The position numbers were made by a program, and so were the translations under genes. The notes below the pieces were generated by a model. The model worked only from the letters and a program-made list of their open reading frames with translations, was not told the DNA's origin and searched no databases. This document shows positions 5,497 to 17,600 of a stretch of DNA of 64,000 nucleotides, piece by piece. Position 1 is the first letter of the stretch; every line of letters begins with the position of its first letter. The stretch lies in sequence record MW845759.1, one strand, 5' to 3'.

Positions 5497-5537
5497 ACTA
5501 CTCTCCCGAAAGGGAGAGTAGTTTCTTTTCTTTTTTT
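5497..5537. terminator. Intrinsic terminator between convergent genes
   Basis: Stem actactctccc-gaaa-gggagagtagt followed by T-rich tract; A-rich upstream. Confidence 0.85.
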
Positions 5538-6051
5538 AGACGAAGCCATCCAGCTCAGCGTTCTTCCACGCCAGTACATCCTTACCAGTATAGACACGGA
5601 ACACGTAGCTACCCTGCCACTTTAAATGGTTCGGGCTAAAAGTCAATTTGATATCACGGTACTCGTCCTGATTCTCATCGACTGCCAATTCAGTACGGAC
5701 GATAGTGACTTCAGACATCAAGACCGGATGGTTAGGGAGCGACGCGTTCATTACCGACAACACCATGTCGTCACTATCCCAGTTGTACTGAGCATCGTTA
5801 ATGATACTGCTGGGTTCGTCTTCCCCGTTCGGGTGGGTAAAATTAAACCGGAAGAAGTGGTATTCTTTACTGCCTGTAAAATTCGGACTGTCTGCTTTAG
5901 CGGTGATCACTAACGCGGTGTTTCGCGTGTCGCCGTCACCAGTGGGTGCGTAATTCGTGGGGTTACCAAACTCAACATCGGATAAAGCTAAACCCAAGTT
6001 CGGGTTTTTGGCATTAATCATGCCAATGAACTCTTCCTGCAATGTAGCCAT
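5536..6051 (-). CDS. Putative virion structural protein (ELDGF-tail family)
   Basis: 171 aa, RBS ggagg; paralog of 6109..6636; ends KNAELDGFV. Confidence 0.7.
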   Translation of the reverse strand: MATLQEEFIGMINAKNPNLGLALSDVEFGNPTNYAPTGDGDTRNTALVITAKADSPNFTGSKEYHFFRFNFTHPNGEDEPSSIINDAQYNWDSDDMVLSVMNASLPNHPVLMSEVTIVRTELAVDENQDEYRDIKLTFSPNHLKWQGSYVFRVYTGKDVLAWKNAELDGFV

Positions 6052-6064
6052 TTCGTACCTCCAA

Positions 6065-6094
6065 AGAAAAAATAAAGAGGGGCCAAAGCCCCTC
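6065..6094 (-). terminator. Intrinsic terminator
   Basis: gaggggc-caaa-gcccctc with A-run on its left (U-tract on minus strand). Confidence 0.7.
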
Positions 6095-6108
6095 CAGATT
6101 ATTTACCT

Positions 6109-6636
6109 TTACGCGGTAAAGCCGTCCAGTTCACCGTCAGTGGTGCTCAGGTCGGTTTTCACGATCTCTTCAGTTACCGTGTAGGTCGCAATCTGACCTT
6201 CGTGGTACTTGATGTGGCCAGCGTTGATAGACACACTGATAATCAGCGGGTCTTCTTCGGTACCAGCACCGTCACGGGTGATGGACAGCTCAGCCAGTGT
6301 GAACGCGTCTTCCGCGCGGCCCGCTGCAATCACGTCAGCATTCAGGACAGCCAATACTTCTGCATCGGTATCCCAGTCAGCCAGATCCGCGGTTACCGCT
6401 TTCGGACCAACTACACCTGCAGACAGACGGATGTAGTGCAGTTCGACATTACTGGTGAAGTGCTCACTCTCTGCTTTTGCAGTGATAGTGATTTTGGAGT
6501 CACGACCGCCAGTACCACCGTCTAGTGCAGAAGCGGCGCTGAAGTCAACATCGGCCACAGACAACGCCTGCGCCAGACCCGGGTTTTTGGTGTTAAACAA
6601 CTCTACCAGCTGCTGCTGGAAACTCTTAATAGCCAT
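6109..6636 (-). CDS. Putative virion structural protein (ELDGF-tail family)
   Basis: Start moved to MAIKSF at 6636 (RBS gaggg); ends DLSTTDGELDGFTA. Confidence 0.7.
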   Translation of the reverse strand: MAIKSFQQQLVELFNTKNPGLAQALSVADVDFSAASALDGGTGGRDSKITITAKAESEHFTSNVELHYIRLSAGVVGPKAVTADLADWDTDAEVLAVLNADVIAAGRAEDAFTLAELSITRDGAGTEEDPLIISVSINAGHIKYHEGQIATYTVTEEIVKTDLSTTDGELDGFTA

Positions 6637-6682
6637 GTTGCAATTCCCTCTGTTAACAGTTGAGGTGACGGGTGTCGTCATA

Positions 6683-6722
6683 AGAAAAAGGCTAAACCGC
6701 TATCCCGGTGAAAGGATAGCGG
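6683..6722 (-). terminator. Intrinsic terminator
   Basis: ccgctatcc...ggatagcgg stem with aagaaaaag on its left. Confidence 0.65.
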
Positions 6723-6727
6723 CCGTA

Positions 6728-7252
6728 TTACAGGTTCGGAACGATTTTATTCCATTCGATAGGTTGCTGTTTAATCACCGTTACCACCCCACGCGTTGGC
6801 GACCATACGGTTAAGTCCGGTTGGTTACGCACGTCGAAATGGAACCAGCTAATATCGGTTTCGAGGAAGTGAATGAACGGGAACTCATTCGGGTTCTGCT
6901 GAATGTAGGCACGCACAGCCTGCGGCGTATAACTGACGAACGTCAAGTCCATCGCCCCGCCGTATTTGTGCATGCTGTCAGACGCCGCATAAAGCTCGTG
7001 AGCGCGTTCTTTATAATTGCCACCCTTTGGTTGCTCTTGATTAATAAAGAACTGTAGCGTGCGTACAGAGCGCTGTGTCATGCCTTTCGCTGGTGAGTTG
7101 ACAATGATAGCACCGAATTTGTTACGCAGCTGCTGTAACGTGAGCATCACCAACGGGTTAATGATGTACGCCGCGTTCTTCCCCCGGCGTTTGATGATAT
7201 CCGGCGGCATTAACTCTTCGAGTTTAAACTGGTTGGGGTTGGGCTGAAACAT
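6728..7252 (-). CDS. Peptidase M15-family Zn metallopeptidase (possible peptidoglycan hydrolase)
   Basis: SMHKYGGAMD (H-x6-D) and WFHFD motifs typical of LAS/M15 peptidases. Confidence 0.75.
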   Translation of the reverse strand: MFQPNPNQFKLEELMPPDIIKRRGKNAAYIINPLVMLTLQQLRNKFGAIIVNSPAKGMTQRSVRTLQFFINQEQPKGGNYKERAHELYAASDSMHKYGGAMDLTFVSYTPQAVRAYIQQNPNEFPFIHFLETDISWFHFDVRNQPDLTVWSPTRGVVTVIKQQPIEWNKIVPNL

Positions 7253-7984: not shown

Positions 7985-8641
7985 TTACAGCTCAGCGACA
8001 AACTTCTCTTTCAAACCTTTGAGCGTCGTGTAATCACTCTTCTCAGCGGCTGTCCGAGCAGTCTGTTTAAAGTCGGTCATCTTTTCATGCAGCCCATTGG
8101 TACGCGCAACAATGGCTTCGTTCAACGCTTTCAAATCATCCAGCGTGAATTCGAATTTCGCATTATTGGTATCGACCCAGTAACCCGGGTCTTGCTCTGT
8201 CGAAAGGTAACGACTGATCGCCGCTAACGCTTTCTCATCGGTTTGATAAACCCGACCGTTCAGTTCGAGTGGGGCGACCACTGCTTCACTGTACGCTTGG
8301 TTTACCCACGCAATGAGTTCGGTCAGTAACGCGACACACTTCCCGTGCGTCGAGATGCGCTCCGCCTGACGCTGGGCCAAATCAATCCCCAGCACATCAC
8401 TGATAAAGGTGTGTGCGGACTTAAGCGTGAACTTAATCTCCAGCGGAGACAAGCCCTGCGCTTTCAGTTGGGAAGACAGCTCTTCGTCTTTCATCCCGTC
8501 CAGCAAACGGTAATGTGCCAGACGAGACAGAGACGGGTTCCAACGCGAGTCACTTAAATGTCCATCCACGAACTGGCCGTGACGGTCAATCAGTTTCCCG
8601 CTGTTGAGAAAGCGATCTTTTATTTGGTCATTACTAAGCAT
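7985..8641 (-). CDS. DUF4376-like protein (tail-fibre-associated/chaperone candidate)
   Basis: C-terminal NGRVYQTDEKA...YWVDTNNAKFEFTLDDLKAL..AI pattern resembles DUF4376, which is often found beside tail fibre genes. Confidence 0.6.
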   Translation of the reverse strand: MLSNDQIKDRFLNSGKLIDRHGQFVDGHLSDSRWNPSLSRLAHYRLLDGMKDEELSSQLKAQGLSPLEIKFTLKSAHTFISDVLGIDLAQRQAERISTHGKCVALLTELIAWVNQAYSEAVVAPLELNGRVYQTDEKALAAISRYLSTEQDPGYWVDTNNAKFEFTLDDLKALNEAIVARTNGLHEKMTDFKQTARTAAEKSDYTTLKGLKEKFVAEL

Positions 8642-9183
8642 TCAGTTTTCCCCAGGATGCCGACGTCTTTCAGCAGACCGTAGTCGAGGAACGAGTAGTC
8701 CTTCGCCAAGTCATACTGCCAAACGAGGTTAGACACGCGCGATTCCACCGGCGTTTCTTCAGCAGTGTTGAACACCCCGATATGATCCCACAGCTCAAAG
8801 TAGTTGCACTGGTCTTTGTTGTCGCGCACCACTTTGATTTTGTTGTTCGGGAACGATTGCGCCAAGGCAATCAGCGAGTCAACCTGCTTGTTACGTTTCG
8901 CACGGAACAGCACAGTCAACTTGCTCGGCGGGGTATCCAGCATACGCTGCTCTAAGCCGGCGTTACGCAGTTCAGCGTTCGCCAGTGAGTTATGGCCGTT
9001 CTCCACACAGTCCAGCTCAATGTGCACGTTCAACGAGTGACGTACAACCAGCTTTTTCACTGTGTCGGTGTAGTGCTCTGCTTTACACAGGATGCTTACA
9101 TCGAACAGCTTATGCTTCGTCAGAAAGGCATCCAGCAGCGTGGTATCAAGCCGAGTAAAATTGTGAATCATCAATGACTGCAT
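8620..9183 (-). CDS. Hypothetical accessory protein of the radical SAM cluster
   Basis: Likely start MQSLMIHNF at 9183 (or 9171); overlaps both neighbours, suggesting translational coupling. Confidence 0.7.
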   Translation of the reverse strand: MQSLMIHNFTRLDTTLLDAFLTKHKLFDVSILCKAEHYTDTVKKLVVRHSLNVHIELDCVENGHNSLANAELRNAGLEQRMLDTPPSKLTVLFRAKRNKQVDSLIALAQSFPNNKIKVVRDNKDQCNYFELWDHIGVFNTAEETPVESRVSNLVWQYDLAKDYSFLDYGLLKDVGILGKTECLVMTK

Positions 9184-10492
9184 TAGGCTTTTCCTGTTTT
9201 GCATGAACGTGTGGTTGAACAGCCTCTGGTTTCGCGCCAGAGAGTTTTGGAAGTTTGTTTTCCTGCGAGGCTTTAACACGGCACTCGTAGCAGTTGCACG
9301 ACAACGGTTTGAACTGGTCGCCATAGGTACCAAAACGACGTTCCCACCATTGGGCAGTTAACAGCTTAGCGGTGGTCCAGCCGCACTGGCGACGTTCCGA
9401 GTGATACTGCTTACGCGCATCCTCTTCACCGTCACCATTCTCGTACGCTGCAGCTACGCAGGACGCACAGATGTGTTTGGCCGGGCAGCCCAGACAAGCA
9501 TCGGGGTACGACTGCCACTGGGTCTGGACTTCGTTCAGGAGCTTACCGCCGTCGGTGTTGACAATCTCACGACCCACGAGCTTCGCAATTGCCTGACGGG
9601 TGGTTACGGTGGACATGAAGCGGTTACAACCGTAGATGTTACGGTCAAAGCCGAGGCAGGTCATGTGAACCGTGGTACCACAGTGCGGTTTCAGACGTTC
9701 AGGGTCGTAACGAATCTGATCGTTATGCTGTAACATCTCACGCCATTCCGGAGCCCACATGTTATCGATGTTCATACCACGAGGGGTGATGTGCCCCATC
9801 TCAGCGGTCGGGTCTAAGTGCAGACCTTTACCAATCCAGTATTCCAGCACTTCAATCATCTGGTTAGAGATGCCGAGTGCCATATCACGTGGAATGATGT
9901 CTTCGAAAATCATGTTACCGTAAATAGTGCCGCCACCAGACTGGTCAATCAGCGACTTCATGGACGCCGCGTAATGCTTCAGCGTGTCATGGGTAAAGGT
10001 CGCTTTAATCCCGAGGTCGTTGATTTTCATCGACTTCAGGTAATGATAACCTTCCAGCGCTTTCTCGTAGGAACCTTTACGAGAGGTGGTGAAGATACGG
10101 TGACGGTCGTGGGTTTCCGGCAGACCATCGATTGACACGCCGATAGACAGTTTCGGATACCAGCGCTCAATGATTGAACGGTTTAACGGCTTATCAAAAA
10201 GCGTTCCGTTCGTGGAGATGGAGAACATGTATGGGCGGTTATCACGCGCCGCTAACATCTCTGCAGTTTCGAAGGCCGCAATCAGCAGCTTCGGTTGCAG
10301 GAACGGTTCCCCACCGATAATGTCGATAATCGCGCCGCCTACATTCGGCTTGCCGCGGTCACGGTCAAAACAGGCGTGGATGAAGTCAACCACGTCATCT
10401 ACACGGTTGTTACGCGGGAACTTGCGCTCGTAGCAATAATCGCAATCGAGGTTACACGACAAGTTCGTAACAATCTGATACGTTACGTCCAT
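9146..10492 (-). CDS. Radical SAM enzyme with SPASM-type domain; predicted peptide maturase
   Basis: CNLDCDYC, GGEP, STNGT, SIDG motifs; C-terminal C-x7-C-x9-C ... CxxC-x5-C-xx-C ... C; extra CNCYEC tail. Confidence 0.9.
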   Translation of the reverse strand: MDVTYQIVTNLSCNLDCDYCYERKFPRNNRVDDVVDFIHACFDRDRGKPNVGGAIIDIIGGEPFLQPKLLIAAFETAEMLAARDNRPYMFSISTNGTLFDKPLNRSIIERWYPKLSIGVSIDGLPETHDRHRIFTTSRKGSYEKALEGYHYLKSMKINDLGIKATFTHDTLKHYAASMKSLIDQSGGGTIYGNMIFEDIIPRDMALGISNQMIEVLEYWIGKGLHLDPTAEMGHITPRGMNIDNMWAPEWREMLQHNDQIRYDPERLKPHCGTTVHMTCLGFDRNIYGCNRFMSTVTTRQAIAKLVGREIVNTDGGKLLNEVQTQWQSYPDACLGCPAKHICASCVAAAYENGDGEEDARKQYHSERRQCGWTTAKLLTAQWWERRFGTYGDQFKPLSCNCYECRVKASQENKLPKLSGAKPEAVQPHVHAKQEKPNAVIDDSQFYSA

Positions 10493-10505
10493 TACAACAT
10501 CCCCC

Positions 10506-11381
10506 TCAGGACTGTGGCAAATTTAGGTAGGTGTGCAGATACTTGTAAGCCTCTACACCGATGATTTGGGCCATGGCATTACAGCCTGAGTTGACGTAGA
10601 AGTCTACGTTCTCATTGTGCTTAATGTCACCGTTGGGTTCTACCAGTTTCAGCTGACCGCAAGCGTTACAGTTGGTGTGGTCGAAGAACTTCTCCAGACG
10701 GAACACCGTATTGATACCGTTAACGCTATTGAGATGCTGCATCTGTTCTTCAATACGCTTGTAGCCGTAAATGAAGTTCAGCACGTGGTCCTGATTGAGA
10801 GGTTTGTGCATCAGTTTATCAAACGTCAGGGTCATAGCACCCACACGTAAGTGATGCAGCGCAGCATGCAGGCGCATGGTGTCTTCAAACCAGCGCGGTT
10901 TGCTAACGTGTTCGCGGGTCAATACGCCCCACGTAACAACATTGTCCAGCGCGTGCATGACTTCAAACGCTTCGTGCGCCCCTTCTTCCACAAACGCCAT
11001 CAGACTGCGCTCACCGCCTTCAAAATGGTCGATGGAGACGATGATGCGGTCAAACGTTTTCAGGAAGTCGAGCTGCGAGAGTTTGAGTTTTCGGCCGTTG
11101 GTAAACAGCAGGTGTTTTGCGGAAGGCACTTGCTCACGTGCTTCGCCTACAAAGTCAACTAACTTCTGGTAGGCCAATAACGGTTCGCCGCCCGTCCACA
11201 GGAATTCCTCTACTTGAGGATTTTCTTTTATAATGTCCACCATTGCCTCTTTGTGTTTTGTTTTCGAAACATCACCCTTGGCCATGTGAGCTGCCCCTCC
11301 ACAGAAGGAGCAGTTCAGGTTGCACTTAGACGTCAGGGCAATGTCAATCATGGTAGCAGACGACTTAGGGGTATCGTGCAT
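10506..11381 (-). CDS. Second radical SAM enzyme (short C-terminal Cys motif)
   Basis: CNLNCSFC, TGGEPLL, FTNG, VSID motifs; C-terminal CNAC...C; likely start MHDTP at 11381. Confidence 0.88.
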   Translation of the reverse strand: MHDTPKSSATMIDIALTSKCNLNCSFCGGAAHMAKGDVSKTKHKEAMVDIIKENPQVEEFLWTGGEPLLAYQKLVDFVGEAREQVPSAKHLLFTNGRKLKLSQLDFLKTFDRIIVSIDHFEGGERSLMAFVEEGAHEAFEVMHALDNVVTWGVLTREHVSKPRWFEDTMRLHAALHHLRVGAMTLTFDKLMHKPLNQDHVLNFIYGYKRIEEQMQHLNSVNGINTVFRLEKFFDHTNCNACGQLKLVEPNGDIKHNENVDFYVNSGCNAMAQIIGVEAYKYLHTYLNLPQS

Positions 11382-12303
11382 CAGGGTTTTTGTTCCACAG
11401 ATTTTCCATGAACGCGAATAACGGGTCGGAGACACGAACGTCTTCACCCGGGACGATCAGTTTCGGGTCATGGTACGCTTTAAGAATAGCATCCAGCACC
11501 TTGTTGCGATCGTTTAAACGCAGCAGCTCATCCACCGTCACGGTCTGACGGGTAAAGGAACTGACCGCATTTTGCTCTTCGGCCGACAGCAGACCCGCTT
11601 CATTGACTTTACCGACCAAGAAGGTCAGCACACGATGTAAGTCCGCGGTAGTGTTAGGTTGCTCACCGTACTCATACTGCAACAGATAGTTGGTCCACGG
11701 CTTACGAATGCGTTTGGTAATCTCATGCGCATCGGTAATTGCGGTCCACTTCATATCACGGTGGTCCCATGTAAATTTATAGGAATACGCGAGCAGGTCG
11801 GCCAGACAGTCAATACCTAACTCTTCGTACCCTTCAACCGGGTAGTAACGCTCGAGGTTGAAATAGCCGTCATCAACGGTACCTTCTTCAACCAGCGTAT
11901 AATAGAACGGGAACGACGACGGGTATTCCCAGTTCCACTGACGCTGAATCATCGGTTTCATGCCGTGTTCTTTGAACGAGGCAAACACCATCTCCAGCGG
12001 CATGGAATAGTTCAGCACCGCATCCGTGAAGTAATACTTTTCATTGACGAGCTTACCGACGTACTCCGTCGTGCCGTCGAGGTTGTACAGAATTTTAATC
12101 CGTAACCCATCCGGCGTGGTAAACTCTTCACGCACTTCTGCATGATTTAAAATATCACGCGGACGCAGACGAGGAAATTCACCCGGGTTCATGCAAATCA
12201 AACGCAGGCGATCATTCACGTGGTCGTTTACCGCATCGGGCAGCCCAAGATGGATTGGGTAGTTAAAGTTGGTACGAAACGCCAAGTGTTCATTATTCTT
12301 CAC
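11365..12303 (-). CDS. Hypothetical accessory protein of the radical SAM cluster
   Basis: 312 aa, GTG start with RBS taaggag 10 nt after the preceding stop; aromatic-rich; no recognised motif. Confidence 0.75.
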   Translation of the reverse strand: MKNNEHLAFRTNFNYPIHLGLPDAVNDHVNDRLRLICMNPGEFPRLRPRDILNHAEVREEFTTPDGLRIKILYNLDGTTEYVGKLVNEKYYFTDAVLNYSMPLEMVFASFKEHGMKPMIQRQWNWEYPSSFPFYYTLVEEGTVDDGYFNLERYYPVEGYEELGIDCLADLLAYSYKFTWDHRDMKWTAITDAHEITKRIRKPWTNYLLQYEYGEQPNTTADLHRVLTFLVGKVNEAGLLSAEEQNAVSSFTRQTVTVDELLRLNDRNKVLDAILKAYHDPKLIVPGEDVRVSDPLFAFMENLWNKNPDARYP

Positions 12304-12313
12304 GGATAGCTCC

Positions 12314-12523
12314 TTACGATGGCCACGTTACCGCTTTAGTGCCACCTGATGCTGACCAGCTGCAGCTGCCGTTACAACGGTAGGCCCCAGCCGGAATATT
12401 GTTTAAACGGTTCGCGTTATTCACCGTCCCCCGCGTGGCGATATAGTTATTCGCAGACGCAGTCGTGATGTACCCTTCGAGACGGGCGATTTGTTGCGCA
12501 ACCTCGTTCAGTGAAACAGCCAT
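12314..12523 (-). CDS. Short paralog of the Cys-repeat proteins (2 Cys only)
   Basis: RBS taaggag; MAVSLNEV leader, NANRLNN, RCNGSCSWS. Confidence 0.8.
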   Translation of the reverse strand: MAVSLNEVAQQIARLEGYITTASANNYIATRGTVNNANRLNNIPAGAYRCNGSCSWSASGGTKAVTWPS

Positions 12524-12532
12524 AGCGACTCC

Positions 12533-12931
12533 TTACGGTCCTGAGCAACCAGAGCATCCCGTACAAGACGACGAACAGCTACCAGAGCAGCCGCCTGAAC
12601 AGCCTCCCGAACAACTTGTAGAGCACGTACCGGAACAGGTTCCCGTACAGTTACCCGAACAACCCCCAGCACAACCACCGGTGCAGTTAGACGAGCACGA
12701 ACCGCCGCACGTCCCTGAACAAGTGCCTGTACAACCGCCAGAACATGCAGAGCCGCATGACCAGCTACAAGTGCCGCCACAGTGGTAATAGTTGGCGTCT
12801 TGACCGGCTAATCGGTCGACGTTGTTTGAAGTTTTACCGCCGATGTACGCTTGAACCCCTGCTTCTGTTTTCAGTGCAGCGGACTCAATGTTGTTCATCT
12901 GGTTCTTTACTGCATTAAGTGATACAGCCAT
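12533..12931 (-). CDS. CXXX-repeat Cys-rich protein 2 (putative radical SAM substrate)
   Basis: RBS taaggag; 50-aa leader plus 82-aa core with 21 Cys in Gly/Ser/Thr-rich CXXX repeats. Confidence 0.88.
   Translation of the reverse strand: MAVSLNAVKNQMNNIESAALKTEAGVQAYIGGKTSNNVDRLAGQDANYYHCGGTCSWSCGSACSGGCTGTCSGTCGGSCSSNCTGGCAGGCSGNCTGTCSGTCSTSCSGGCSGGCSGSCSSSCTGCSGCSGP
12536..12781 (-). repeat. Coding CXXX tandem repeat (12-nt period)
   Basis: 18 CXXX units followed by CTG CSG CSGP. Confidence 0.9.
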
Positions 12932-12942
12932 GGTCGCTCTCC

Positions 12943-13329
12943 TTACATCGGACCAGAACAGGCCGAACAGCCCGTACAGGAACTAGAACAAGAGCCAGAG
13001 CACCCGTGACCACATCCGCCGGAGCACGATGAGGAACAAGCACTACCACAGCCACCCACGCAGGTGCCGGTACACGTGCCGGAGCAACTCCCGGAACACG
13101 TACCAGAACAACCACCGGAGCAGTTACCGGAACAACTCGAGCAACCATAGGAGCACCCAGACGAACATGTCCAGCTACAGCTACCGTTACAGCGAATGTC
13201 CCCGGGTGACATACCACCCAGATTGTTTGCGTTAAATGCTTTGGTTGCAACCTGATTGTCCACAGAAGGTCCTGTGGCCAAAGACAGTCTCGCAATTCGC
13301 GCATTAACGTCATTAAGTGAAACGGCCAT
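12943..13329 (-). CDS. CXXX-repeat Cys-rich protein 1 (putative radical SAM substrate)
   Basis: RBS aagga; 46-aa leader plus 82-aa core with 21 Cys. Confidence 0.88.
   Translation of the reverse strand: MAVSLNDVNARIARLSLATGPSVDNQVATKAFNANNLGGMSPGDIRCNGSCSWTCSSGCSYGCSSCSGNCSGGCSGTCSGSCSGTCTGTCVGGCGSACSSSCSGGCGHGCSGSCSSSCTGCSACSGPM
12946..13191 (-). repeat. Coding CXXX tandem repeat (12-nt period)
   Basis: CXXX units with one early CSS unit, ending CTG CSA CSGPM. Confidence 0.9.
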
Positions 13330-13383: not shown

Positions 13384-14583
13384 TTATCTGGTACCTGCAG
13401 CCGACTGGAGATCGTCGCGGGTAGTGAGGCTGTTGTTAACGTGAACAGCCGCTTGCACCACGCCACCGGTGTTTTTGTTGAGGTACTGGTCGTGTGGGTT
13501 AGCCGCGGATTTGTGTGCTGCGAGATCCGAGTTGGTGTTGGCCAACGCCTGCTCCAGAGCCGCGATGCGATTTTCGAGACCTTGGTTCGCTGAGCTCATG
13601 TTCGCAATCTGCTGTTTCAGGTTACTGATTTCCTGATTCGCTGCTGCAAGACCCTGAGTAAGGGTACCGAGCTGTTGCGAGAGCAGACCGACCTGCGTTT
13701 CCAGCACCAGAATCTCATCCATCAGCTCAGCAATCTGCAGCTGGGTTTTCTGGTAGTTCTGGTCGACGGTGTTCAGCTGGGTGTTCCACGTCCCAATCGA
13801 GCTAACCAGTGCGGCAATCTGCTGCGTTAAGTTAGTGTCGGTTGCACCCAGGGTGCCGATATCTTGCAGGACAGCGTTAATGCTACTCTGTACTGTTTGA
13901 ATCTGCGCCCGGACTTCGGCGGTGGAGTAAACGTCCAACTGGCCACGGGTAATGTTGTGCACGTTACCTTCAGCCGTACGGTGCTCTTCTAATGCTGACA
14001 GCATTTCTTGACGATACGCTTTGAGCATGTTCTGAATCTGCACCATTTCAGCAGACGCGCCGATACGGATAGCGTCGTTAAGCTTAGACAACAGCGTAAC
14101 AATATATTCAAAACCGAAGAAGTCGCCCATGTCACGAAATGCCGGTGCACCCGCAAACTCGTCAGGCACATCGCGCAGCTCAGCGAAGTTAATTGTGGGG
14201 TCATCTAAGTTCAGCGTATTGATACATTGAATGATGTTGTCCACGTTCGCGGCATACGGCCCACCAACAATCTGAGCCGACGCGGTAATGTCTGCTGGGA
14301 CTGTCGATTTAGTAATAACGATGGCTGTGGCAATCTCACGTCCACCGGCTTGTTTAGTCAGGGACGGGTGGAGCAGAATCACTTCGTAGTTGGTGCCCCG
14401 AACGAGTGGCTGATTAGGCGCATTCACCGGAGCCATTCGAAGCGTATCAACAAAGAACGGACCTGTCGGGAAAGCAAACGCTCGGTTAACAGTACCGGTA
14501 CCGAGTTTAATCGGATGCGATACGGCATTACTGAGGTTGGTTCCGAACAGGTCCAATGGGTATTGCATTGCTACCTTACTCAT
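13384..14583 (-). CDS. Putative short fibre/whisker protein with long coiled coil
   Basis: N-terminal YPLDLFG..N domain shared with the three large fibre proteins; roughly 130-residue Gln/Leu heptad region; H...NPH motifs. Confidence 0.7.
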   Translation of the reverse strand: MSKVAMQYPLDLFGTNLSNAVSHPIKLGTGTVNRAFAFPTGPFFVDTLRMAPVNAPNQPLVRGTNYEVILLHPSLTKQAGGREIATAIVITKSTVPADITASAQIVGGPYAANVDNIIQCINTLNLDDPTINFAELRDVPDEFAGAPAFRDMGDFFGFEYIVTLLSKLNDAIRIGASAEMVQIQNMLKAYRQEMLSALEEHRTAEGNVHNITRGQLDVYSTAEVRAQIQTVQSSINAVLQDIGTLGATDTNLTQQIAALVSSIGTWNTQLNTVDQNYQKTQLQIAELMDEILVLETQVGLLSQQLGTLTQGLAAANQEISNLKQQIANMSSANQGLENRIAALEQALANTNSDLAAHKSAANPHDQYLNKNTGGVVQAAVHVNNSLTTRDDLQSAAGTR

Positions 14584-14610
14584 CGGAAAAACTCCTTGTG
14601 GTGAGTAAAG

Positions 14611-14634
14611 AGTGGGGAGCCGAAACTCCCCACT
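14611..14634. terminator. Hairpin between tail fibre gene and short fibre gene (weak terminator or processing site)
   Basis: agtggggag-ccgaaa-ctccccact; only a weak U-tract on the minus strand. Confidence 0.5.
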
Positions 14635-14638
14635 TTAT

Positions 14639-17600
14639 TTACACGCTCAGGGTGGAATCATGAATCATAACATCAAGGACAGTTGCCGTTGTTGCATCAA
14701 AATAGATGTCAACGTACTTGCCGCCCGCGAATGCACGTTCTTCCGTCCAGAACATAACCGGAGCTTTCGCCCCGCCCGATTGACGCATTGCCAGAATATA
14801 GTCTTTCCCCGTAGGGACGACGATGGTCTGGCCGCCCACTGCATTAGTACCGGTCAACGTCGTTGGACTTGCAGGGTTAGGCAGTTTAACACCTGTCATC
14901 GCCGCATTGGATACCGCGAGTTTTGTCGTACCGTCTTGCACCAACTCGAATGCAATATAGCACGGCGAATTACCCGGGGCTTCCTTAACAACGAAGGCTA
15001 ACGCGTTGGGTTGATTTAACAGCGCACCTGTCAGTGTCAGGTTAGCGTTCCCCGACAGCGTCCCTTTGGAGACACCGTTAAGGTACACATCCACCGAATC
15101 ATCAACCTGCACGTTCAGCACCAACGATGAAGAGGTTGGCGTGAAACTGGTCTTTGTTGCCCATGCAGTTCCGGCGGCCAGTTTACTCTCCGGCAAGAGA
15201 GTAATTGCAGGCGAGGCTAATGGTGGACTATAGGCGCTAGCTCGAGTCCCAACATTCGGCCAAAGCTTCTCGGCATAGTTGGTCAGCAGCATCCACGGGA
15301 ACGCCGACGCTGGGAAAGTCAGGCGTTGGATGGCGTTGAAGTTACCGCCTAACTGGTTTGCTGTTTCCAGCGCCGCAGCTGTGCCGTAAGACTTCGTTAA
15401 ATCCGCACCCGGACGAGTGATGTTCCAGAACCGTGTAGCATTCTGAGACGTTGCCCCGTACCCGAACCGACAACTGCGTGCAAAGGTCGGCGCCGCCGTC
15501 ACCAAGTCCACTTCCGCGTATTTATACGTGGCTGTGTTTCTTAGCTGACTTAACGTTAACCCCTTCTTCGCCGCAATGATGGCGCGGATGTTGTCATCCC
15601 GCACACCGGTGGTTGGCAGTAACGCGTGTTCTACCGCGATATACAGCTTGTTACCGCGCCGTTCAGCATACACGTGCGCATACCACTTACTCCATGCCAG
15701 CAAGTCCGTGGTGTCCGCATCCAACGTAGTGATTAAACGGGAGGATGCTTGGCGGTAGTTCTCTTTGAGCTGAATCAGGCCGGACAGGTTAACGTGTGAC
15801 TCAATCGAGTTGCCGATAGCCAAACATAACGTCTGCTCTACATTAGCCGCAGTGTCTTCCTTCTTCAATGCTGCGAGCACCACCGCAACACCGTCGTTGT
15901 CACCGTCGTTAGAAGTGACGACCGTATTGAACACATAGTCGCCCACCAATTCGTCCGAGATAAAGCCCACGAACGTTGCGGTGTTTAACGTACATTCAAC
16001 AACGTCGTCCGCTGCCACGTATCTCCATGCCACTAACTCTGACTCGTTCGCAGGTTGCGCGACGGTAGAGTTGTTGTGGCTGAAACGGTACCAGCTATTA
16101 TAGATGTCTTCGAACGATGGGAAAGCAAACGAGTCTACCGTCCCTAAGTTTTCCATGTTCGAGTACAACGTATCCGGCGCCGCCGCACTTGGCAGGTAAC
16201 CGTGTGCGTAGCGGTTATCGGCATGACTCAACAGTGCACCAACGCGCCCCAGTCGTTTAACGCGACTGATTTTCGCATCTGTGATTGCATTGCTGGTCGT
16301 CGTGGCATAACCAATATACAGCCGGGAAGCGGTGTCCGGCAGCTGGGTTTTCGACACTAGATACTCAGCCACTCCAGATGCATTTAACTGCACGTGGAAA
16401 TAGAACGTTGCATCTTGGTAGTCCGTAGGGAATAGCGTTTTGAAATCGAACGTCGCCGCAGGGACAAGGTGGTCTTCCATCTTCGCAAAGAACGGAACCG
16501 CTTGCGTGATGTACAGAATCATCCCTTCTGCGACTTGCGGGCCAAAGAGTATTGTGGGGCGCCCGCCGGTTTCAAACGCAATACCTTTCCCGCTGTAAAC
16601 CGTCCCCCCGAGATAAACTCCGAGCATTACAAAACCAATTTTTGCGATCTCATCTGTTTCCTGAAGATACACATAGTCGATTTCATTATTAGACGGGTTA
16701 AACGAAATACGCGTACCTGTCCATGTTGTCAAATCTTGAGAGATTTTCAACAGGTAACTCAAGTCGGTGCTAGAGCTACTGGTATTCACACGACATAGCG
16801 TTCTTGTCCTTAATAACCAGCCGTCGGAACGCTTAATCAAACGCATCTGGCTCATCTCTGCCAAATCATTGAGCGTGACCGCAGACACCCTGAATTTCTC
16901 TTCCTTCCACACCTCGATACCACCGAGCATCGACAGCGAAATAATTCCATTGTCAAACGTCATCGGGATACGGTAGAAATAAGTGCTGTTATCAAACCCA
17001 CCGGCCGTCGCGTTCGGGGTCAGAATACAAGTTTGCAGCACGCAGAGGTTTTGTCCTCCGAAGTCAAAGATACTCAGCCAAGCGATTCGCAGCGTAGGAT
17101 CAATAGCCAACCAGCCCGGAATTTTCGCGTCTAAGAAGTTTTCAATAGCTGACCACTGCTCAGCACTGATAGTAACCCTCTCGTTGGTGATGGTGGTGGT
17201 GCCTGCGATATTTCGATACGCACGACTTTCTGCCTTTCTAAACGAAGCACCGTTGAGATAGGACTGACTACCGTTATAGACTTGTCCCAGGCGACAAATC
17301 GCTTCGTAGTCATTTTGCGACACGACCTCACGATCATTAGACGGCCCCCAACCCACATAATCCGGCACGCCGTAGGTAGTGTCCGTGTCGTACGCAATGC
17401 TCATACACGACCCGGTACTACGTTGACGAAGAAGCATTTTCTTGGCAGTGCCGCCCAAAGCCGCCATCCCGCGCATTCTAAGAATGTACGGCGAAGCGTA
17501 TGGTCCAAGCACATTCACACTGTTTCCAATTGAGTTGGTCCAATCGGCATTCCAGCGGGCGCTTTCAAACGCGTCAGCATTTGGTAAGCGGAAACGCACC

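Follow-up and report, generated by a model that had tools for sequence, protein, structure and literature searches.

A candidate radical SAM maturation system for Cys-repeat tail-fibre domains in the jumbo phage pEa_SNUABM_38 and its relatives

The closest described counterpart of the gene cluster analysed in this study is the TIGR04114/TIGR04115 system (PF27846), which was defined in silico. It combines a target protein that has a Cys at every fourth residue with a neighbouring SPASM-type radical S-adenosylmethionine (SAM) enzyme without a fused recognition element (RRE) for peptides that ribosomes synthesise and that are modified after translation (RiPPs). Our literature search found no biochemical work on this family. 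The cluster lies in the Erwinia phage pEa_SNUABM_38 (MW845759.1), a Derbicusvirus with a 224-kb genome whose near kin are EarlPhillipIV, Derbicus, Phobos and Cronobacter phage CR5, and we analysed a 64-kb stretch of this record, called the window below. At 7985-13329 on the minus strand, eight close-packed genes encode three small paralogous proteins (CXXX-A, CXXX-B and CXXX-C), a 312-residue protein (p312), two radical SAM enzymes (rSAM2 and rSAM1), a 187-residue protein (p187) and a DUF4376 protein. We propose, with a probability of roughly 0.6, that these genes are the distal end of a tail-fibre operon and that the enzymes mature or cross-link a Cys-repeat domain at the fibre tip. Radical SAM cross-linking of a virion protein, the probable function here, is not known to have been described before. 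Judged by the comparisons presented here, the system is a divergent, phage-borne and fibre-linked variant of the in silico CXXX-repeat maturase system.

Canonical TIGR04115 members on viral contigs are also found within tail modules. In canonical TIGR04114 targets the repeat stands before or after a different, non-fibre-like domain and can contain up to 80 Cys, whereas in pEa_SNUABM_38 it follows a fibre-like junction with a C-S-W unit, and p312, rSAM2, p187 and the DUF4376 protein are extra conserved partners. The top-scoring characterised family for rSAM1 is that of PapB, from the PapB/PapA (freyrasin) system. PapB acts on repeated C-x3-acceptor motifs and forms small i-to-i+4 thioether rings, the C-x3-D rings (PMC10739248). 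It requires Asp or Glu at i+4, a position taken by the following Cys in the CXXX cores. PapA yields a small peptide, whereas the CXXX substrate is likely to be a fibre-associated protein domain. For the SPASM enzyme CrpC of Methanococcus voltae it was reported in 2026 that ranthionine links are put into the 28.8-kDa Cys-rich protein CrpA; the first 47 residues of CrpA are also found in its paralogue CrpB, and a helper role is possible for a paralogue (PMC13692751). CrpC/CrpA is like the CXXX set in having a Cys-rich protein substrate that is not processed to a peptide and paralogues with a common N-terminus of ~47 residues, and QhpD/QhpC is a second case of protein rather than peptide cross-linking. 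The sequence relation of CrpC (TIGR04463) to rSAM1 is weak, with 50.4 bits (QhpD, 55 bits), CrpC, unlike rSAM1, carries an RRE, and the CrpA repeats are 17 residues long with C-x-x-Q/D. The CrpC and QhpD systems are moreover cellular, while that of rSAM1 is viral and linked to tail fibres. CteB, which acts on SCIFF (5wgg), has a SPASM architecture like rSAM1, but the significant alignment is confined to the radical SAM core, and CteB differs in its N-terminal RRE and its short six-Cys peptide substrate.

On the structural side, the comparison is with the tip domains at the C-terminus of phage tail fibres and the assembly chaperones encoded downstream of them, as in P2 gpH/gpG and Mu-type fibres. 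The gene of a gpG-type chaperone normally sits directly after the fibre gene. In one phage locus of our survey (L028) the Cys repeat ends a P2-type fibre and a p312-like gene comes directly next, at the chaperone position, although similarity between p312 and known fibre chaperones is undetectable. We know of no fibre tip made of a Cys-every-fourth repeat, nor of one that needs radical SAM enzymes.

The Cys repeats themselves are well defined. CXXX-A (12943-13329, 128 aa) consists of an N-terminal domain of ~46 aa and an 82-aa core, and CXXX-B (12533-12931, 132 aa) is its paralogue. Translation of the open reading frames (ORFs) bears out the claim of an earlier note on this DNA that there are three small paralogues, two of them with exactly 21 Cys. 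The Cys spacing is 4 in 17/20 intervals of CXXX-A and in 18/20 of CXXX-B, and 3 in the other 3/20 and 2/20. Cys aside, both cores (82 residues each) are nearly all Ser, Gly and Thr and contain no Asp, Glu, Lys or Arg. CXXX-C (12314-12523, 69 aa) has the N-terminal domain in common with the other two (~46-50 residues in all three paralogues), and of the repeat only the first C-x3-C-S-W unit, with 2 Cys. All three match phrog_6085 (4.5e-43 for CXXX-A, 5e-40 for CXXX-B and 4e-24, over profile positions 1-67, for CXXX-C), and an AAGGAG ribosome-binding site precedes each of them. CXXX-A (20.0 bits) and CXXX-B (23.8 bits) reach the curated TIGR04114/PF27846 cutoff of 20 bits, a borderline membership, and the CXXX homologue in locus L005 has a precomputed PF27846 match. 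Among 629 C-x3-C units from 53 distinct jumbo-phage proteins, the first intervening residue is Ser or Thr in 77%, the second is Gly in 56% and the third is Gly, Ser or Thr in 84%. Cys accounts for ~16% of CXXX-A and CXXX-B against a median of 1.2% for window ORFs of at least 150 aa, and no further ORF of the window has at least five consecutive C-x(2-4)-C units. Such a pattern is far outside what chance would give.

A repeat of such low complexity could be an artefact, and we compared codon positions with the orthologues in Phobos, CR5 and Wellington. Third-position changes predominate (e.g. 68 vs 20 and 11), synonymous codon changes are at least as many as non-synonymous ones, with a ~3-5x excess against Phobos, and all aligned Cys are retained. 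Both 21-Cys genes are genuine and under clear purifying selection; the codon-position pattern and the Cys conservation exclude a low-complexity artefact or a wrong frame. The DNA itself carries nothing more than short, degenerate arrays of 12 and 24 nt. The periodicity is hence upheld at the protein level, and a recent tandem expansion of DNA is excluded as its origin. All eight genes are kept in 21/21 lineages of the jumbo group, which includes SPN3US, phiEaH2, Asesino and Kwan. Over these 21 loci paralogue A always has 21 Cys, B has 20-23 and C has 2-4, and the fraction of 3-residue spacings in paralogue A varies despite its constant Cys number. The constant 21 Cys, while rSAM1 is only 60% identical across the lineages, argues for a defined structure.

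rSAM1 (9146-10492, 448 aa; Pfam Radical_SAM 9.3e-12) has a C-x3-C-x2-C cluster motif at residues 13-20, and with its first cluster Cys already at residue 13 it lacks an N-terminal RRE. In 13 divergent relatives (down to 23% identity) the residues C13, C17, C20, C271, C289, C333, C336, C342, C345 and C370 are invariant, and the seven Cys from C271 to C370 stand in a SPASM-like arrangement. The best hidden Markov model matches are to PapB (NF047865; 113.2 bits, E 1.4e-32, residues 12-348 on model positions 12-319 of 330) and to TIGR04115 (111.5 bits, E 6e-32, residues 3-362 on positions 4-343 of 359). With TIGR04115 the enzyme has in common a near-full-length match, the cluster motif, the seven-Cys SPASM-type motif and a neighbouring Cys-every-fourth gene, the two 21-Cys genes lying 1.8-2.5 kb upstream in the same operon, while its score misses the curated cutoff of 350 bits. 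The relation to TIGR04114/TIGR04115 that the earlier note named thus stands for the targets, at 20.0 and 23.8 bits against 20, and is sub-threshold for the maturase, at 111.5 against 350. Membership of the PapB family fails on the score, which is under the cutoff of 340, and on the cores, which have no C-x3-Asp/Glu.

A different kind of maturase was also considered. The sulfatase maturase anSME recognises the motif C/S-x-P/A-x-R, which is absent from the CXXX proteins, and rSAM1 scores only 50.6 bits against the anSME model TIGR03942 (cutoff 349). A sulfatase or cofactor maturase identity is rejected on these low scores, and the best homologues, PapB and the CXXX-repeat maturases, are not of the kind that would have spoken against the earlier note. 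In the PDB a sequence search detected CteB (5wgg, 8e-8) as the only solved structure. On sequence grounds rSAM1 is placed in the SPASM clade of peptide and protein maturases, closest to PapB and the CXXX-repeat family, and we presume it to be the CXXX maturase. Residues ~385-448 (window 9146-9340) are a jumbo-specific C-terminal extension with three further invariant Cys, C399, C401 and C404.

The second enzyme, rSAM2 (10506-11381, 291 aa, with the start as annotated in relatives; the ORF extends to 11447), matches Pfam Radical_SAM at 6.7e-11. Besides a C-x3-C-x2-C motif it has, towards its C-terminus, three invariant Cys (C238, C241 and C267), which possibly bind a single auxiliary cluster. 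Family libraries gave no informative match for it, and PDB matches were weak (BtrN and others). Two radical SAM enzymes are present as predicted, and of the two only rSAM1 has a SPASM-like motif. In locus L029 (8236-10191) a relative of rSAM2 is joined to an rSAM1-like domain in one 651-aa fusion that contains a pair of radical SAM domains together with a SPASM domain, and this fusion ties the two enzymes together functionally.

How regularly enzyme and repeat travel together was assessed in viral genomes. Aligned relatives of rSAM1, used as the query for a scan of IMG/VR, gave 326 viral contigs, from which 80 loci were retained; with 6 loci obtained previously they form a set of 86. The set includes two deposited phage records, EarlPhillipIV (L001) and CR5 (L002), and the other 84 loci were counted apart; SPN3US is L003. 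A Cys-every-fourth gene is found in 82/86 of these phage or viral loci. Both deposited records have a CXXX ORF near the radical SAM gene, and 80/84 of the other loci have a co-oriented Cys-every-fourth ORF at a distance of at most ~5 kb, which lies upstream of the enzyme in most loci; L034-L039 and L047 have it downstream. Short or truncated contigs account for the four loci without one, and the earlier note's concern that such enzymes might commonly occur without CXXX genes is thereby answered. A further tblastn search with the L005 enzyme as query gained nothing extra. As a control, the identical scan across 185,579 reference genomes gave 80 bacterial or archaeal loci, of which 10 carry such an ORF, eight of these being among the ten best matches. 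Most control loci match just the N-terminal radical SAM core, and all the relatives found there are distant (<=27-29% identity). The surveyed phage enzymes are merely 25-37% identical to rSAM1, yet the pairing is near-universal, and we conclude that rSAM1 relatives are paired near-obligately with Cys-every-fourth genes across divergent phages. By TIGR04115 score the loci fall into tiers: canonical at 361-599 bits, intermediate at 217-273, fibre-fused at 145-169 and pEa_SNUABM_38 at 111.

The fibre-fused group, with several non-jumbo phages, provides the link to tail fibres. In its members longer proteins, of 250-600 aa, end in the Cys repeat as their C-terminal domain. In L028 it follows an N-terminal P2-type Phage_tail_fib domain (PF12571, 1.8e-40), the proteins of L027 and L029 match the tail-fibre families phrog_6722 (2e-40) and phrog_2631 (2.7e-32), and that of L026 matches a long-tail-fibre distal subunit family. 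The L032 protein has collagen-like Gly-x-y repeats, and the L004 protein, which has HxH fibre repeats, comes after a tail tip of the GpJ type. phrog_6085 matches the C-termini of L025, L026, L029, L030, L032 and L004 at 1e-5 to 3e-14, and these matches take in part of the N-terminal domain of the profile. L027 and L028 are proven fibres; for their C-termini phrog_6085 gave no match at E<=0.001, and the CXXX repeat is seen in them directly. The segment before the core is alike in the window (NANNLGGMSPGDIRCNGSCSWTC) and in L004 (ANASKLAGQTSGYYRCSGCSWTC), and neither the C-S-W unit nor this junction feature is in any of 62 canonical proteins. In the canonical TIGR04115 loci L034, L042 and L057, the enzyme and Cys-repeat genes come straight after tape-measure, baseplate and fibre genes. 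The CXXX proteins hence have both marks of a tail-fibre or appendage protein, homology to a part of fibre proteins and a position in the tail module. The guess in the earlier note that they are virion appendages receives strong comparative support from the homologous repeat that forms the C-terminal domain of tail-fibre proteins elsewhere.

The gene order in the window suggests the same. Upstream of CXXX-A are virion structural paralogues of 399, 1894, 1340 and 1209 aa with a common N-terminal domain; the four genes had been called fibre genes, and while all four are there, paralogous virion structural proteins is the better term. Their homologue in SPN3US, gp168, is described as a tail baseplate/fibre protein (PMC5105663). 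The nearest of them, a 399-aa coiled-coil virion structural protein (13384-14583, minus strand; phrog_2163 2.8e-100), is separated from CXXX-A by a 54-nt gap free of terminators, and the CXXX and radical SAM genes are placed in one operon with the fibre genes because of this absence. This 399-aa protein is a possible docking partner for the CXXX proteins. The operon ends in an intrinsic-terminator-like hairpin with a UUCG loop (7982-7963, minus strand; GTGTGCCC-TTCG-GGGCACAC, then a T-run), the sole terminator-like hairpin on the minus strand of this stretch. This terminator and all of the genes, which are on the minus strand throughout, lie at the coordinates given in the earlier note, which counted seven genes where there are eight. 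On the 3' side of the operon are a DUF1353 'tail assembly chaperone' gene and an endolysin-like gene.

Less can be said about the accessory proteins. p312 (11365-12303, 312 aa; phrog_8030 1.4e-148) has a confident AlphaFold2 model, with a pLDDT (the score predicted for the local distance difference test) of 84 and a predicted template modelling score of 0.78. In fold searches this model had no PDB match (best E 0.39) and matched only its orthologue in BFVD, and Pfam and NCBIfam have no match for p312, its distant relatives or p187, in line with the first description of p312 as a protein of unassigned kind. Relatives of p312 occur in 32 loci, namely all jumbo loci, L004-L006 and L026-L033, and in none of the canonical TIGR04115 loci, and p312 directly follows the CXXX gene in the inspected loci L004, L005 and L026-L030. 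The p312 family is uncommon and accounts for 35 clusters out of 1.84 billion representatives. p187 (8620-9183, 187 aa; phrog_7988 9.1e-86) is present in 21/21 jumbo loci and in no other surveyed locus. The final gene of the operon (7985-8641, 218 aa; phrog_8169 7.6e-96) was rightly described as DUF4376-like (PF14301, 3.5e-11), next to a protein of ~187 aa. It has a weak match to a 'tail protein' PHROG, and in L005 DUF4376 genes flank the CXXX gene; the DUF4376 protein is probably a fibre-associated or assembly protein.

These observations lead to a hypothesis of how the system might work. Late in infection, in the reducing cytoplasm of the host, rSAM1 would abstract hydrogen atoms along the Gly/Ser/Thr-rich core and join Cys sulfurs to nearby residues as ranthionine-type thioethers. 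Disulfides cannot form in a reducing cytoplasm, and thioether chemistry is the probable one by analogy, since PapB, CteB and QhpD, the nearest characterised relatives of rSAM1, all make Cys thioethers. Such stapling would turn a disordered 82-residue tail into a compact covalent domain. p312, encoded where fibre assembly chaperones usually sit, most likely would hold or present the substrate and so replace the missing RRE, and rSAM2 might contribute modifications of another type or a further set of them. The small proteins would enter the fibre apparatus via their common N-terminal helix and the junction segment, and the DUF4376 and downstream DUF1353 proteins could assist assembly.

The virion proteins proposed here are largely invisible in current annotation. 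CXXX-A and CXXX-B are unannotated in the deposited pEa_SNUABM_38 record, where ~860 bases are free of features, and their exact sequences were not found in a collection of 15 billion proteins. In EarlPhillipIV gp161 (L001 16609-16881) is an alternative-frame ORF over the Cys-repeat region, and in CR5 the gene CR5_157 (L002 17011-17223) is called on the strand opposite to the Cys-repeat gene. In SPN3US (L003 6094-6905), whose correct ORFs are at 6094-6486, 6497-6901 and 6917-7123, gp166 is called in an alternative frame, and no feature whatsoever covers the first paralogue. Because several GenBank records miss these genes, mis-frame them or put them on the wrong strand, the Cys-repeat proteins were beyond the reach of virion proteomics.

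Several observations weigh against our proposal. The Pfam SPASM model does not report rSAM1 at E<=0.1, and the enzyme is far under the curated cutoffs of both TIGR04115 (350) and PapB (340). The acceptor of PapB-type Cys-to-Asp rings is absent, as the cores have no Asp or Glu. AlphaFold2 gives no structure for the Cys core of CXXX-B: in a prediction made without an alignment (pLDDT 46.5) there is a helix at residues 5-30 and the remainder is of low confidence. In the jumbo phages the repeat is on separate small proteins, and their attachment to a fibre is suggested by the fused homologues. The role given to p312 follows from gene position and co-occurrence only. Finally, the SPN3US proteome papers and one supplement make no mention of gp161-gp167, and the true ORFs were outside the annotation that could be searched then.

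Some of these points would be equally expected if the Cys domain at the fibre tip were held together by metal, by Fe-S-like clusters or by disulfides formed after lysis, while the radical SAM enzymes carried out other chemistry, for example epimerisation, C-methylation or the oxidation of Cys or Ser. Acidic acceptors like those of PapB substrates are missing from the cores, which AlphaFold2 does not fold alone, rSAM2 has no informative family match, and Cys-rich proteins beside radical SAM enzymes have often been suspected to bind metal (PMC13692751). We nevertheless regard this explanation as unlikely, as PapB, CteB and QhpD, and with a weaker family match CrpC, all form Cys thioethers, and rSAM1 has an intact seven-Cys SPASM motif and only a weak sulfatase-maturase match (50.6 bits). 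Another possibility is that the small proteins are precursors of a RiPP-like peptide that is no part of the virion, for instance a bacteriocin, a metal chelator or a factor for host takeover or anti-defence. Their anatomy is indeed typical of RiPP precursors, with a common leader-like N-terminal domain of ~46 residues and a C-terminal core, and their neighbours are maturase-like; the term 'RiPP-like' used at first is apt in this respect, although what we expect is modification of a protein and not a released peptide. Pfam, NCBIfam and PHROG searches find no exporter or leader protease in the cluster, as had been noted, and an immunity gene is absent too; for a classical RiPP cluster the leader-core-like anatomy is there, yet no RRE, protease or transporter family. 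The homologous repeats are permanent C-terminal domains of fibres of 250-600 aa, and in each tier examined the genes are in the tail module, here in a common operon with fibre genes. We consider a peptide of this kind improbable.

It has also been suggested that genes like these support the metabolism of the host. Papers on SPFM/SPN3US-type phages call the radical SAM enzymes host-metabolism-enhancing genes (PMC6614189), and Campylobacter phages, with their many radical SAM genes, were given a similar reading (PMC2853527). On this explanation the enzymes would be auxiliary metabolic genes that adjoin low-complexity Cys-rich genes by chance. Chance is difficult to reconcile with a near-universal Cys-repeat pairing among enzymes of 25-37% identity when control loci rarely carry such ORFs, and the best family matches are to peptide maturases rather than cofactor enzymes, which makes this the least credible of the explanations. 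In our literature search no paper tied phage radical SAM enzymes to Cys-repeat or fibre proteins.

Should these enzymes indeed mature a fibre-tip domain, no earlier case of radical SAM chemistry in the maturation of a virion structural protein would be known, and an orphan radical SAM family defined by computation would gain a biological function. The SPN3US-type genes would need another label than 'host metabolism', and a route would come to light by which phages, inside a reducing cell, make extracellular domains with covalent cross-links. The annotation gap exposed here is systematic, with Cys-repeat genes miscalled or missing even in the model phage SPN3US. Whether the CXXX-repeat radical SAM system (TIGR04114/TIGR04115) is generally a tail-fibre maturation system of phages seems to us an evenly balanced question. 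In that case radical SAM stapling of a virion structural protein would produce thioether-laddered tips in the reducing cytoplasm, and this in hundreds of phages that range from siphoviruses of the gut to jumbo phages of the SPN3US type.

The survey also turned up other genes near such modules. The L004 contig is siphovirus-like and has three radical SAM genes, and at 10876-11418, just past its second fibre gene, it encodes a Cys-rich protein of 180 aa for which a Pfam match to TSP1_ADAMTS is precomputed. In L057 a reverse transcriptase (13737-15014; phrog_1423, 1.6e-76) lies ~3.5 kb downstream of the canonical CXXX/rSAM module beside tail genes and may be part of a diversity-generating retroelement. 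Campylobacter phage CP220, of which the first 50 kb of the genome were scanned, is reported to carry 11 radical SAM genes. Its protein CPT_0032 (L168 24206-24577) has 123 aa and ~27 Cys with a three-residue period, and may represent a parallel Cys-repeat and radical SAM system. Many jumbo-phage contigs of 220-245 kb with the genes described here are deposited under isolate assemblies of Salmonella enterica and E. coli, so jumbo phage genomes seem to travel within bacterial isolate sequencing data. In the window itself, the endolysin-like gene 3' of the operon (6728-7252) belongs to phrog_894, and downstream of it and of the DUF1353 gene are two neighbouring paralogues (5536-6051 and 6109-6681; phrog_4862) with weak virion-structural matches.

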